Source of the DNA: Bispira polyomma
Lineage: Eukaryota
Reading direction: 5' to 3'
NCBI GenBank assembly: GCA_965649765.1
Contig: OZ287757.1
Coordinates: forward strand, 52,018,001 to 52,082,000
Length of the DNA stretch: 64,000 nucleotides
The position numbers were made by a program, and so were the translations under genes. The notes beneath the pieces were generated by a model that made no database searches, was not told the DNA's origin, and was given only the letters and a program-made list of their open reading frames with translations. This document shows positions 11,585-63,104 of the stretch, piece by piece. Each line of letters opens with the position of its first letter. The stretch's first letter is position 1.

Positions 11585-11617
11585 ATTTTAATGAAAACAA
11601 AAGATCTAGTAGAGAAT
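11585..11617 (+). CDS. POLA1: DNA polymerase alpha catalytic subunit, 33-nt exon (ILMKTKDLVEN)
   Basis: Polypyrimidine tract + ttcag acceptor, gtgagt donor; matches human ILMHTKEMVQK just before [12 protein letters not shown]. Not in the ORF track. Confidence 0.9.
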
Positions 11618-11724
11618 GTGAGTATTTGAGTTCACTTGCTACTAATATTTAATTTAAATTTTTTTTAAATATCGGTACTCCATAATTTGTGTTACCTTTA
11701 ACATCGTCAGTTATGTTGTATATC

Positions 11725-12383
11725 TAGTGCGGTATTCACAAATGTGCTAAACCGAGAGACTTTGTTTAAGTAGACATTTTCTTGTGCGTGACTTGTGGTT
11801 GCAGCTTGGGGTTATAAAATCAATCCTCAATAAAATCGTAGAAGTTTTTTCCATGTAGCCATGCCTAAGTTATATTCACAACGGGCAGTAAATATTAGGA
11901 GTACAGGTGAAACTGACTAGCAATTTTTACACTCTCAAACAGTTGAAAGCGTTCCCAAACAAATAATCGGATATTCTTTTTATTGATAATTGAAAAAAAA
12001 ATATATTACATTTTGCCTATGATTCTAAAAATAAGCAGTTTTATATGGAGTTTTTTATAAAACAGTGATTAAAATTGGCAAGCCGAATAATTAAATAGCA
12101 TCATCTCTATTTACATTTAATGTATCTGCAACCCAAAACCAAACGTTCTACTATTCTCTTTCAGTCCTAATTAGGGCTCAAAATGTTCAGAGATTGGCAA
12201 TTATTAGTTGACGGTGACAAACAATGATGCAGTCCGGGCTTTGCGATTCGATAATCTATATTTTATTAAATTTACTCACTATATTGGCCAAATCTTAAAA
12301 TGGGCCCAGAAGCACATGACTACATATCTGAATTCAGCAGTGTTCAGTTTGAGCTTGAATTTCTTTCTGAGAATACGGCACTA
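11725..12383. mobile_element. ~660-bp non-autonomous TIR element filling most of an 824-nt POLA1 intron
   Basis: Ends ctagtgcggtattc / gaatacggcactag; 3' part resembles the 35930-36140 family. Confidence 0.5.
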
Positions 12384-12441
12384 GGAATGTCATTCCTGGT
12401 CAATATGGTGGTTTACAAAACTTGTGTGTGACATATTCCAG

Positions 12442-12534
12442 ATGAACTTGGAGGTGATCTATGGAGACACTGACTCCATTATGGTGAACACTAACAGCAC
12501 AGACATCGAACAGGTCTTTAAACTGGGAAATAAG
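12442..12534 (+). CDS. POLA1: POLA1 exon with family-B motif C ([31 protein letters not shown])
   Basis: ccag acceptor, gtaggt donor; catalytic YGDTDS motif; near-identical to animal Pol alpha. Confidence 0.97.
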
Positions 12535-58336: not shown

Positions 58337-58688
58337 GGCCTTACAGACCGCCGACTACACGACACGACATGGCAAGAAAATAGAAATAAGACAATATATA
58401 TTGGTTATGCAGACTGCATCCCTGCACCACACTACACTTCAATTGAACTTTGGAGAAATCTCTAAAACAATATGTCATCACATATATTGATTAATTCTTC
58501 TATTGTCTTATACTCCCTTCCCCCAACCATTCCCATGGGTGTGAGGATGTATACTTTGTATGGATTTTTGTAGTGCTCTGTCGTGGTTGGTGTGAACATA
58601 ACTGTTGTGCAGTAACGTGTCATCCCCTGTAGTGTGTCATGCCTTTTAGTGTAGTGTCGTGACGTGTAGTCGGCGGTTTGTAAAACCC
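58337..58688. mobile_element. ~350-bp MITE (PIF/Harbinger-like)
   Basis: TTACAGACCGCCGACTACACGACACGACA / TGTCGTGACGTGTAGTCGGCGGTTTGTAA inverted ends. Confidence 0.7.
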
Positions 58689-59433
58689 TTAAGGGATGAA
58701 AAAAGGTCAGCCGATGACGGCTGATATATATCTGATCACATGGAAGCATAGGCTAACTTTTCTACCAAAGCCATCATAAACACATAATACAGAGGTAGAT
58801 GGACCGGGTAGTCTTTCTTGGGAGCTTTAGTTTCTGTAGCATCTAATCTAACTTTTATAGTGCTTATCTCTGTGCTAGCAGATTCTAAGGCGTATGAGAC
58901 AAATCATTTTGACAATTTCTTATAGCCATTGGATGTACATTGATTGTGACCATGGAGAGGCCGGAAAATGTCTTTTTACATTGATGAAGTCCTAAAATTT
59001 GTAGTGAATTATTAATAAATATAACTACAAGAGTCAGTAAATATAGTGCATTCCTCCGCCAAAGTTCTATAACAAGTGACAGCCCTTCCAGTTGGATCTA
59101 GTCCAAATTCGAATGGATGCTAGCCAATACCCAATCCTTCAACAAAAATTTGCATCTTGAATCGGTTCAGTCACTTATTTGCATTATTTTGGTGTGAAAT
59201 CAAACAGACCAATAAAACCGGATGAAAGCAAAACTTCTATGGCGCAGGAGGTAACAAGCCAGAATCGCGATGCCAAATTTCCAATCAAAATCTCGTATGT
59301 TTGCAAGTATATCTCTTTTTGAGTAAAAGCAATAGTTTACGTCAATTTCAGTGAATATTCTGCATTTAACGTTGAAATTAGTTGGGTTGCAGCCTTTACC
59401 TTTGTCCAGCCTGCCTTTTTTTAACGGCTATTG

Positions 59434-59671
59434 GGGGGCCGCGGTGGCCTAGTGGTTAGCAAGCAGTGCGCTTCACAATCACTAGTCTCTCACCTCTGGG
59501 ATCGGCTGGCGTGGGTTCGACTCCTGTCGATGCCTATGTGGGAAAGGTGGTAGTTCCTTACTGTGGGCCGCTGGTTTCAGTGTAGAACCTTGATCAACTG
59601 TATACAGTGTTTCCTCCAGCATTCCAACTATCCGTCCCAACATAACCTACTAAAAGGTACTAGAGTGGACG
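59434..59671 (+). mobile_element. SINE family A copy lacking its 3' tail
   Basis: Intact A/B boxes; TSD acggctattg at 59424-59433 / 59669-59678. Confidence 0.88.
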
Positions 59672-62581
59672 GCTATTGTTTTTTGTTGAAAACTAGAGCC
59701 AAGGCCAGTCTAACTTAAGCTGTTATACATCTGCATTACTCAAAACAAAAGTTCACATAGCATTTAGAGGTGGGGGGGGGGGGGGGGGGTTGGGGGTGGT
59801 AAGCCCATTGATTTCTCCAGTCAGGCATGCCGCATTACTCTCACTGAGTACAATGTATCTACCCGGGGGTAAATAAACCCTCTCCCCCCCCCACATCCCC
59901 CATCTCATAGAGACAAGTTGTGGGGAGATGCCCATAATAACTGCTCGAATCAAGCCCCCACTCCCCATGGTCAATTTCCTGTGACAACAAAGGAAAAAAA
60001 AATGACGGTGTTAATTTAATATAAAGATGATACCCCTCCTACACCCACCCCCATCTATTGATTTTTGATGGAGGGAGGGTGGGGGGTGATGGGGAACTAT
60101 TGCATCGATCGCCGCATCAGTGGATAATTAAAACTAATTCCGAAACAACAATATAATCAGTTTTCTAAACAATTACCTTCGATTTGCCACAGGAAAAGCT
60201 ACTAGGCAGGGGGGCCAAGTGTGTAGTCGAACGTTTCAAACATCGTGTCTGCCTGATTAGGAAGAAAATTAGAATTCAATAGCCCAGCAGGAGATAAAAC
60301 ACCTTTTTTGCTAATGGAGAGATAAAAACAAGTTGTACCCAATTGCCGAGGAATTTTTTTTATTGTTGTGAGTATGTTTTGTGCTCCCACAAGGTTCCCC
60401 CCTCCCTTCCATTTCCATCTCTCCCCCCACCCTAACACTAAATAATAACAGACAGCATAAAGCATTAACACGCCTCCGAAAGTCCTTTACAAGAATTAAA
60501 TGGATTCTCGTATTCCATCAATAGGTCTAAATTGAATTCAGCACTTCTGGGGGTAATGTAATATATATCTGGAACAATGCTGGTTAAATGTCACAAGAGA
60601 GGGTAAGGTGGAAGTTTCAAATGAGCACAGACTAAGGGTACCAGTTTTATTGGGATGTATAGAGATACAGAGGGTTGGTGACAGGATTAGAACATGGTGG
60701 GTTTCCGGGTAGGAAGGAATGGTAGGTTAGGCATTTGGAATGTTATATACAAAATCTCCAGGGTATGGGAGGAGTGGGGGGGGGGTCCTTAAGGGGGTGG
60801 GATTTTATTAAGGGGAGCAGGATTAAGTGGTCTATTAAATAAATATACCTACAACAACTTAAAACAATATGGTTTACATCGGGATAATGTGGTGTGGTTT
60901 TTTTTTCCCATTTTAGCTTGATTTTTTAAAAATAACTTTTAAGATTTATATTATAACTGAATTTGTTTTTTTTTTAATTTTTTACGTTATTTTATATCAG
61001 ACACTTAGGTTTAATATGTTAAAAAATACAGATGGAGTCTCCTAATTAAAGCAGTAAACCATGTTCAGTTTTGGTTAAATGTGTTGCATTGCAAAATGTA
61101 AAGGGGTGTTATATAACACATCCATACAAGTCTCCATTTCCTACCCATTTAGAAGTAATGTGGTCATACACAAGTATAGAAGTCACATACAAATTTATTC
61201 TTGGTTCTGATAGCACGTGACAAAGGCCTAGCAGACTAAAGCTGCTTGGAAGTCGGATCTAGTATATTGTTATTTTAAATATCTGATTTTACACATTTAA
61301 TGCTTATATTATATTAATGATGTATTTGTACGTTTAACCTATTTTACATGTAAACTCTCTCGTATGCCACGAGTGGCTGACTAGGTCTAGCATTTTATAA
61401 ATTGTATTATGTGTTTATATTTACCAGGTGAGAGTTTAATAAAAAATCTATCTATCTATCTACAAAAGTTACACATAAGGGCATGATTACATGTATTAGT
61501 TTTGTACACCATAAATGTCTTAGGAGTATATTACTTATTTAACATGTGTCAAATGATTTGGCTTGATATGTACCTCAAAGCAAGTTTTCTACTTTTCTTT
61601 TTTGATACATATATAATAATGACTAGTTTTACCACAAGAGTACCAGTAGATAGATAGGCTACAACTGGCCAGGTTGTTCAACATAGTGATGATCTGGTAA
61701 AATATTAAATTATATGGTAATTGAATAATAAATTAAATACAACTTTTTTAATATATGGTAATAAATGAAACGACTGTTCACAGTTGACAGACTTATCCAC
61801 AATATAAGTCCAGAAAATCTAACCAGACACCCAATATACAAACACTTTGGCTATGCAAGTAGTTTAGCTTCTGCAGTAGATCATGTTCAATTATAGTCAT
61901 GGCAGCTCTTCAAAAATATCTATTGTGTCTTATCTATGTCACCTTTTTATTTGATTATTATATTACCACTAGTACCACTACTAACAGTACTTGGCAGTGT
62001 ATCATGGTAGAAAAAAGGTGGCCAACAAAAACAAATATGTTAACTGTTGCCTGCTGGCATATGTGACATTTATTAAATCATCATTCTCTCATCACACAGA
62101 CTAGAGTAGCCAAATTGAATTAAGGTGTGGAAGTAGGCCGGTGGAGAAATAAATGTCCAAAAAAAAATTATACCTATGAATGGTAGTACAAAAACAGTTT
62201 GTATCATTGTTTTTTTAGATGCAGCCTCATATTGTTTTCTTTCTGAAAAAGGCGCTGTTTCTTTTTTAAAAGACAATTCTTGTTTTATAGTTTTTCATAT
62301 GCTGCACCCAATTCATGGAATTACCTACCACAATATATTAGATGCGCACCTTCTCTTTCAACTTTTAGAAGACAAGCTGAAGATACATCTCTATCAAAAA
62401 TCTTATCCCTTCTGACACGGTCTTAGCATCACTGACTCCCTCTCTTGTAACGACCCTTTTCCTGTCCGCCACAATATGATTACTGAATAATGATTTTGTT
62501 TGTTGCACCTTAGAATTCGCTAGTACACTAAGCACCATTATGGAATTAATTAGATTATAGATCCTGTCTTATCTATTTCAG

Positions 62582-63104
62582 CCACCACACTTCAGCAACC
62601 TTCCCCAGAACACCACAGAGATCTCAGGGACAATAAGTACAGCCATCACCATCACCCCTTTATCCACCACAATGAGGTCAGTCCTCCAACCTATCACCCG
62701 TACTACCACGCCGCCACTACAGACAGCCATCATAGTAATGGACCCCCCTCCTCATTCTACGCCAGTAGACACCATCACCATCACGTGGTCGACCATAACG
62801 GTCCCTCTGTACAGAACACTCATCAAAGCCTGTACAATAATAACAACGGCATCGTCAGCAACAGTGAACACTGCCAAGATGTAGACTTGAAGAAAGAAGA
62901 GCACAGTGACTGTAAATCTGACGACGAATTAGTGGACGATACTGGCAGTCACCATGACAACTACTCGGGGTGCCTGGATGACGACATGGACATGGATCCA
63001 GGCAAGCGGAAACAGAGAAGGTACCGGACCACTTTCACCAGTTTCCAGTTGGAGGAGCTAGAGAAAGCATTTCAGAGGACACACTATCCGGACGTCTTCA
63101 CAAG
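62582..63104 (+). CDS. Arx: Aristaless/Arx exon 2: His-rich and acidic region plus homeodomain start ([34 protein letters not shown])
   Basis: tttcag acceptor, open frame for 523 nt, AG|gtaaaa phase-2 donor. Homeodomain segment nearly identical to Drosophila Aristaless and human ARX; the rest of the gene lies beyond the window. Confidence 0.93.

Follow-up and report, generated by a model that had tools for sequence, protein, structure and literature searches.

How old is the neighbourhood of POLA1, a housekeeping replication gene, and ARX, a brain-patterning homeobox gene and human disease gene, and what has held the two together? The question is raised by a stretch of the genome of Bispira polyomma (assembly GCA_965649765.1; 1.035 Gb in 75 contigs), namely 52018001–52082000 on the + strand of contig OZ287757.1 (C10 below). 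This is a window of 64 kb with a G+C content of 31–42% along its length, in whose coordinates positions are given unless a contig is named. A reading made from the letters of this window (the sequence-only reading) had proposed that Pola1 and Arx lie head-to-tail in this invertebrate as a regulatory block that dates to the bilaterian ancestor and survived a local inversion of Arx. In vertebrates, too, these genes adjoin each other, so that descent from the protostome–deuterostome ancestor is the most likely origin of the pairing.

ARX needs ultraconserved enhancers next to and within POLA1 for its expression. If the pair is ancestral, the origin of that landscape becomes testable, as does the question whether a housekeeping bystander can remain tied to a developmental gene for so long; if the pair is shared by chance, it is a caution against seeing a regulatory block in any single shared pair.

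POLA1 and Arx are direct neighbours

Read along the + strand, the window holds the 3' part of POLA1, a spacer of 22,272 bp and then Arx, a head-to-tail order in which the 3' end of POLA1 sits 22 kb upstream of the promoter side of Arx. The POLA1 stop is where the sequence-only reading had placed it, at codon 28737–28739 behind a last exon that ends at 28736, and Arx is on POLA1's strand as claimed, its exons 1–4 all being + with GT-AG introns and fitting phases. The segment marked out by that reading opens, at 11585, on the first base of a small POLA1 exon (ILMKTKDLVEN) and closes, at 63104, on the final base of Arx exon 2. POLA1 and Arx are true direct neighbours here, a conclusion that we hold with near certainty.

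The danger of a misassembly, raised in the sequence-only reading, was examined over 304 kb (-100 kb to +204 kb). This region contains one run of N, an assembly gap of 136 letters at 52766–52901, inside Arx intron 1. Everything from POLA1 to Arx exon 1 lies to the left of the gap, so that the adjacency is independent of it; and because the gap is intronic, it raises no question of reading frame. Reads were checked as the contigs kept for three runs (one study, two samples, 24 listed records). The contigs of both samples equal the assembly over 50000–52584 and 52902–55999, and both flanks of the gap are covered by contig records without a single differing letter. Between POLA1 and Arx exon 1 there is no gap at all.

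An artefact would have to be either a misjoin of POLA1 to Arx or a wrong join of exon 1 to the homeobox at the gap. The second finds some footing in the position of the 136 N, between Arx exons 1 and 2 and beside a very high-copy repeat, and in the fact that none of the 24 listed contig records from the three runs bridges them. Against both stand the gap-free sequence from POLA1 to an exon 1 of Arx type, the uniqueness of exons 1 and 4 (each the sole match in the genome), the contigs of two samples on both flanks, and the join itself: exon 1 and the homeobox are in the right order and on the right strand, 11.4 kb apart, and match the same orthologous proteins in order, with exon 1 ending in phase 1 and exon 2 supplying the two missing bases. 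We regard an artefact of either kind as barely credible.

In all three runs, the repeat that touches the left edge of the gap (52600–52799) has a contig depth some 2,000-fold that of single-copy sequence, the left-flank bin having depths of 209,404, 32,632 and 36,160 versus about 80, 13 and 8 in single-copy bins. The left flank itself, 52608–52765, belongs to a repeat that the gap interrupts and that is also found at 16373–16529 and 14091–14250. The right flank has no match elsewhere in the 304 kb.

The upstream gene is POLA1

The 3' part of POLA1 occupies 11585–28739 (+) with 11 exons, recognised by open frames, Pfam families, the names of matches in the PDB and single copy number. The first exon in the window (11585–11617, ILMKTKDLVEN) is followed by ten more exon-bearing + frames; the motif-B exon that precedes it, KLTANSMYGCLG, sits 7.6 kb upstream of the window start. 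The frame at 12385–12582 carries the YGDTDS motif of a family B polymerase. When ten POLA1 pieces were searched against Pfam, DNA_pol_B (PF00136) was found in four (E 1.3e-10, 5.2e-17, 3.6e-8 and 2e-4) and the alpha-specific zf-DNA_Pol (PF08996) in three (E 9.6e-7, 4.4e-5 and 1.1e-9), with no family in the remaining three. In a PDB search, exon 13139–13342 scored 105 bits to 'DNA polymerase alpha catalytic subunit' (residues 1025–1092 of a 1462-residue chain), with archaeal family B enzymes below 30 bits. The last exon aligned weakly (E 0.037) to residues 1092–1126 of a 1127-residue alpha chain, and because these are the final 35 residues of the chain, the stop at 28737–28739 is the natural end of the gene.

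Genome searches place the whole gene at one locus. The alpha N-terminal domain (PF12254) has a single match in the genome, C10:51919165–51919281 (+), 98.8 kb ahead of the window, and PF08996 is found at one locus only, so that the N-terminal and C-terminal zinc-finger domains of the alpha subunit lie on one strand of one locus. POLA1 is a single-copy gene about 127.6 kb long, of which only the last 11 exons are in the window.

Two further features of its introns were observed. Long reverse-transcriptase-like and other transposon frames (321, 286 and 544 aa) lie at -89777 to -88072 and -50929 to -49298; being inside introns, they help account for the 128-kb span. In the intron after the YGDTDS exon, frames repeat the 3' end of that exon several times (peptides at 12691–12852; region 12473–12852), a tandem array that arose from this end of the exon.

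The downstream gene is an Arx/aristaless gene

To identify the gene beyond the spacer, its exons were searched separately and its homeodomain was compared as three pieces, identity being assigned from piecewise matches and rankings. Pfam recognised Homeodomain in exon 2 (E 2.9e-7) and OAR (PF03826) in exon 4 (E 6.4e-7, residues 238–255), and exon 4 opens with VWFQNRRAKW, which gives the homeodomain the glutamine at position 50 (Q50) of the paired class. In the PDB ranking for exon 2, Drosophila Aristaless came first with 59.5 bits, ahead of ALX4 (47), Paired (44.6), Pax-3 (41.8) and PHOX2B (37.8); CRX, PRRX2 and PITX2 also ranked below Aristaless. Across the homeodomain pieces, 53–55 of 59 positions were equal in each of nine named Arx/al references. 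Exon 4 searched alone matched 118 proteins, and all the named ones were aristaless, ARX or aristaless-like. Lophotrochozoans (Lingula, Haliotis, Patella, Lineus and Owenia) were the only source of alignments over 94–99% of exon 4, a pattern that points to a genome of lophotrochozoan type. The matches from insects and other ecdysozoans were mostly confined to the homeodomain end of the exon and the OAR motif.

The N-terminus tells the same way. Its motif, KMDLSTKKRRYDIESLIG, compares with MDLSLKKKSAYDIDSLLG in Haliotis and is similar in the Arx proteins of Patella, Lineus and Owenia, those of Haliotis and Patella being closest. In blastp against a database of nine proteins, four were matched by the N-terminus with E from 1e-4 to 4e-2 and the other five were not; Pfam has no model for an N-terminus of this octapeptide type. 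Judged by these matches, the gene beside POLA1 is a member of the Arx/aristaless family with the full Arx architecture (octapeptide-type N-terminus, Q50 and OAR). This bears out the sequence-only reading, which had called it Arx/aristaless: its homeodomain is nearest to Arx/al, ahead of ALX4, Paired, Pax-3 and PHOX2B, and Pfam confirms OAR.

A search of the genome with the exon 2 homeodomain gave 28 loci, and Arx proved to have a relative. The next best locus, C12:21697096 (gene region C12:21696260–21697224), is a second Arx-family homeobox, 85% identical over 34 aa, so that the genome holds two members of the family rather than a single orthologue. The C12 gene matches the references at 53–55 of 60 positions, carries homeodomain positions 1–46 in one exon, without an intron at position 31, and has a helix-3 exon that runs into a tandem HTQGEFSTCS-like repeat and a repetitive C-terminus. 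No match to Arx exon 1 (the N-terminus) or exon 4 was detectable in it, and no OAR motif was detected. Two other loci, on C8 and C1, match the Arx references at 31–36 of 46 positions; from residues typical of those families we take them to be Alx-like and Phox2-like, respectively. A cluster of paired-class homeobox genes around Arx was also considered and dropped, as a helix-3 motif scan of the 304 kb returned Arx only.

Structure of Arx

Arx exon 1 (51012–51168, +, 157 nt) encodes MNKMDLSTKKRRYDIESLIG..., the octapeptide-type N-terminus. Intron 1 (51169–62581, 11.4 kb, GT-AG) holds the assembly gap and is rich in repeats, with very high contig depth at 51200–51599, 52400–52799, 53200–53599 and 54400–54599. 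Exon 2 (62582–63104, 523 nt) contributes a His-rich and acidic region followed by homeodomain positions 1–30. Intron 2 begins at 63105 and fills the window to 64000, and the gene runs past the window end, with exon 3 (EDLAMRITLTEARVQ, 46 nt, +) at 825–870 and exon 4 (VWFQNRRAKWRKKEK ... OAR ... TGA, +) at 1740–2555 beyond it, where a TGA closes the frame. In this four-exon model all introns are GT-AG with consistent phases. The homeodomain is spread over three exons, split after position 30/31, where codon 31 is divided as AG and A between exons 2 and 3, and again after position 46. The protein has 513 codons if it starts at 51012; translation may begin at any of the ATGs at 51012, 51042 and 51051, and the orthologues, which begin MDLS, favour the latter two.

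Downstream, the next recognisable gene is represented by immunoglobulin-domain-like + frames at 91144–91506 and 96367–96708, about 25 kb past the Arx stop. Reverse-transcriptase-like and transposase-like frames lie between these and Arx.

The spacer and the Arx promoter region

That some 22 kb without a recognisable gene follow POLA1 was borne out over the 22,272 bp of the spacer (28740–51011, from the POLA1 stop to the first possible Arx start codon; with interspersed repeats), where Pfam, Rfam and tRNA searches all came back empty. There are 29 stop-to-stop frames of at least 75 aa; the 20 longest were sent to Pfam (E 0.1) and gave no match, and a hidden gene was rejected on that ground, the nine shortest frames not having been sent. 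Rfam families (at gathering score) and tRNAs were absent from the whole window. 'No gene' in the spacer accordingly means no recognisable protein or RNA family, and the sequence may yet harbour an unrecognised transcript.

A genome-wide DNA search with 28740–48739 returned 58,603 first-look candidates, of which those scored belonged mostly to one family of about 260 bp. Two copies, at 30956–31207 and 42601–42874, lie in the spacer in opposite orientations. Many copies elsewhere in the genome are 89–97% identical to them, which suggests a recently active family resembling short interspersed nuclear elements.

The CpG observed/expected ratio is mostly 0.2–0.6 in the spacer and climbs to 0.74–1.03 at 51000–51999. 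Around the Arx start stand three perfect TGACGTCA palindromes (starts 50776, 50974 and 51029; 50776–51036). The window has five such sites, three of them within 260 bp round the Arx start codon, and we estimate from base composition that about 0.7 would be expected in the whole window by chance. Going by their sequence and place, the three are likely promoter-proximal sites of the cAMP response element (CRE) type.

Inheritance or coincidence

The human genome's longest solitary non-coding ultraconserved element is located in the last intron of POLA1. The element uc467 (731 bp), in the last POLA1 intron, adjoins ARX (Ahituv et al. 2007), and a 2022 review (PMC8955779) puts all ARX enhancers but one downstream of ARX, between ARX and POLA1. 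The same review describes a 41-kb duplication made up of the terminal POLA1 exon and the whole of ARX, as well as larger events that duplicate PCYT1B, POLA1 and ARX together. The human locus had been described in the sequence-only reading as adjacent and convergent, with enhancers near or in POLA1, and the positions of uc467 and of the enhancers agree with such a tail-to-tail arrangement.

Linkage beyond the pair was assessed with three human Xp22.11 neighbours, one of which (Pcyt1) is on the POLA1 chromosome and two elsewhere, so that one of the three speaks for a wider conserved neighbourhood. A cytidylyltransferase-domain search gave two loci. One, at C10:50000070–50000231 (-), lies upstream of the N-terminal exon of POLA1 at a distance of 1,918,934 bp, and its frame matches choline-phosphate cytidylyltransferase A (CCT-alpha) with 71.5 bits versus 42.8 for PCYT2, the ethanolamine enzyme. 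We estimate the chance of a single gene falling within 1.92 Mb of POLA1 at 0.37% genome-wide, or 6.6% given the 57.8-Mb contig.

The search for eIF2-gamma returned two matches to its C-terminal domain, at C1:97711506–97711682 and 97734672–97734851 (-), 23 kb apart and with one stop within each. They may represent a tandem duplicate, a pseudogene, or an effect of introns that produces the stops.

Given that the adjacency is real, the POLA1–Arx pairing is probably a legacy of the last ancestor that protostomes and deuterostomes shared. Were it a coincidence, POLA1 and Arx would have become neighbours independently in vertebrates and in this lineage. Some pairs are indeed expected within shared linkage groups: Simakov et al. 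(2013) report 469 protostome–deuterostome blocks versus 157 expected by chance when gene order is shuffled within macrosynteny groups. Very many windows were scanned, the orientation is unlike the human one, and the two other human neighbours are unlinked, all of which would suit coincidence. Yet for one named pair to adjoin on a shared chromosome of about 1,000 genes has, by our estimate, a chance of about 0.2%; Pcyt1, within 1.92 Mb and on the same side, gives independent support for inheritance; and a change of orientation is the rule in such pairs. Chance or convergence seems to us decidedly improbable.

The rule on orientation comes from Irimia et al. (2012), who catalogue almost 600 ancient pairs of unrelated genes, many of which they interpret as regulatory blocks; in only 15–25% of the pairs that are not head-to-head in human is the orientation kept in all species. 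Because orientation is so rarely kept, the changed orientation of POLA1 and Arx is not remarkable. At least one small inversion in one lineage would have turned a common arrangement into the two seen now, tail-to-tail in human and head-to-tail in Bispira. That it was a 'local inversion of Arx', as the sequence-only reading put forward, is one of several equal readings, in which either orientation may be the ancestral one and either gene, in either lineage, the one inverted.

What has kept the pair together

In the window, a developmental regulator lies beside an unrelated gene and no gene was detected between them. A regulator next to an intron-rich housekeeping gene, in a pair that shares enhancers in vertebrates, would fit the regulatory-block type well. 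The mechanism that we propose is that long-range enhancers of Arx are located in the spacer and in the POLA1 introns, so that a break between POLA1 and Arx would sever Arx from part of its control, while small inversions within one chromatin domain would be tolerated. Overall, regulatory constraint may be the cause of the pair's persistence, a tentative claim to which we give slightly less than an even chance. More doubtful still, and put forward as a possibility, is the full form of the proposal: a block of bilaterian age in which POLA1 would have been a bystander of Arx for more than half a billion years, with the vertebrate landscape its descendant, and the control DNA of Arx in Bispira lying in the spacer and the 3' introns of POLA1.

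The pair may instead have been retained passively, the ancestral adjacency being kept by slow rearrangement with POLA1 holding no control elements of Arx. Besides constraint, Simakov et al. (2013) put forward 'intrinsically slow rates of rearrangement' as an explanation. In Bispira, the repeats and transposon remains that fill the spacer and the POLA1 introns are compatible with such retention, as is the position of Pcyt1, on the same chromosome yet 1.9 Mb off, which implies that the wider neighbourhood has loosened. The dispersal of the other tested neighbours can be turned round, for POLA1 and Arx stayed in contact meanwhile. ARX enhancers are, moreover, documented beside and inside POLA1 in vertebrates, and many ancient pairs of a regulator and its neighbour are regulatory blocks according to Irimia et al. 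(2012). On these grounds we consider passive retention unlikely, and we favour on balance, as the best explanation of the whole, an orthologous ancestral pair that was reoriented and perhaps kept as a genomic regulatory block.

Several points weigh against this explanation. The linkage is seen in one invertebrate genome plus vertebrates, and with one genome added, constraint, slow rearrangement and chance are not separable; as 157 of 469 blocks could persist by chance, a single shared pair taken from a scan of every window is not decisive. The spacer bears repeats and is poor in CpG, and the POLA1 introns nearest Arx are small (0.3–6 kb) and carry transposon remains. Of the wider neighbours, eIF2-gamma is on C1 and the PDK/BCKDK-type matches are on C13 and C8, that is, on other chromosomes. 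The identity of Arx was established from pieces and rankings rather than from a tree, and because the C12 homeodomain is equally near the references, the orthologue is set by its architecture and not by the homeodomain alone.

Comparison with known systems

No link between POLA1 and ARX outside vertebrates was found in the main texts of the literature; the supplementary pair lists may hold one. Papers that name both genes are, by title, all on human, mouse or livestock, and neither gene is named in the main text of Irimia et al. (2012) or of Simakov et al. (2013). Arx has been described in another setting in hemichordates, within an isl-otp-rax-arx-gsc cluster (Simakov et al. 2015). Unlike that cluster, the Bispira locus showed no other homeobox between 100 kb before the window and 140 kb after it.

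Closer parallels are the pairs Slc25a21–Pax1/9 and Mipol1–FoxA (Simakov et al. 2015), in which, as in POLA1–Arx, a transcription factor gene and a putative bystander occur together in protostomes and deuterostomes. These pairs are shown in several genomes and within a larger deuterostome cluster, whereas POLA1–Arx is seen in one invertebrate. The pairs of Irimia et al. (2012) likewise set a developmental transcription factor gene beside an unrelated, broadly needed and intron-rich gene, linked in distant lineages, and for the most part do not keep their orientation unless head-to-head, as is the case for POLA1–Arx. The conservation of POLA1–Arx differs in its footing, which is one invertebrate and vertebrates (human and mouse), and the pair is not named in the main text of that study. 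We regard POLA1–Arx as a candidate addition to these ancient bystander–target microsynteny pairs.

The nearest counterpart is the vertebrate locus itself (human Xp21.3). The enhancers of the human locus are placed beyond the 3' end of ARX and within the final intron of POLA1. The human genes are tail-to-tail and those of Bispira head-to-tail, with the POLA1 3' end 22 kb upstream of the Arx promoter. In both, the same two orthologues are adjacent, with the 3' end of POLA1 facing Arx, and in both there is a cytidylyltransferase gene beyond POLA1, on the side away from Arx: PCYT1B in human and, in Bispira, a Pcyt1 exon 1.92 Mb away.

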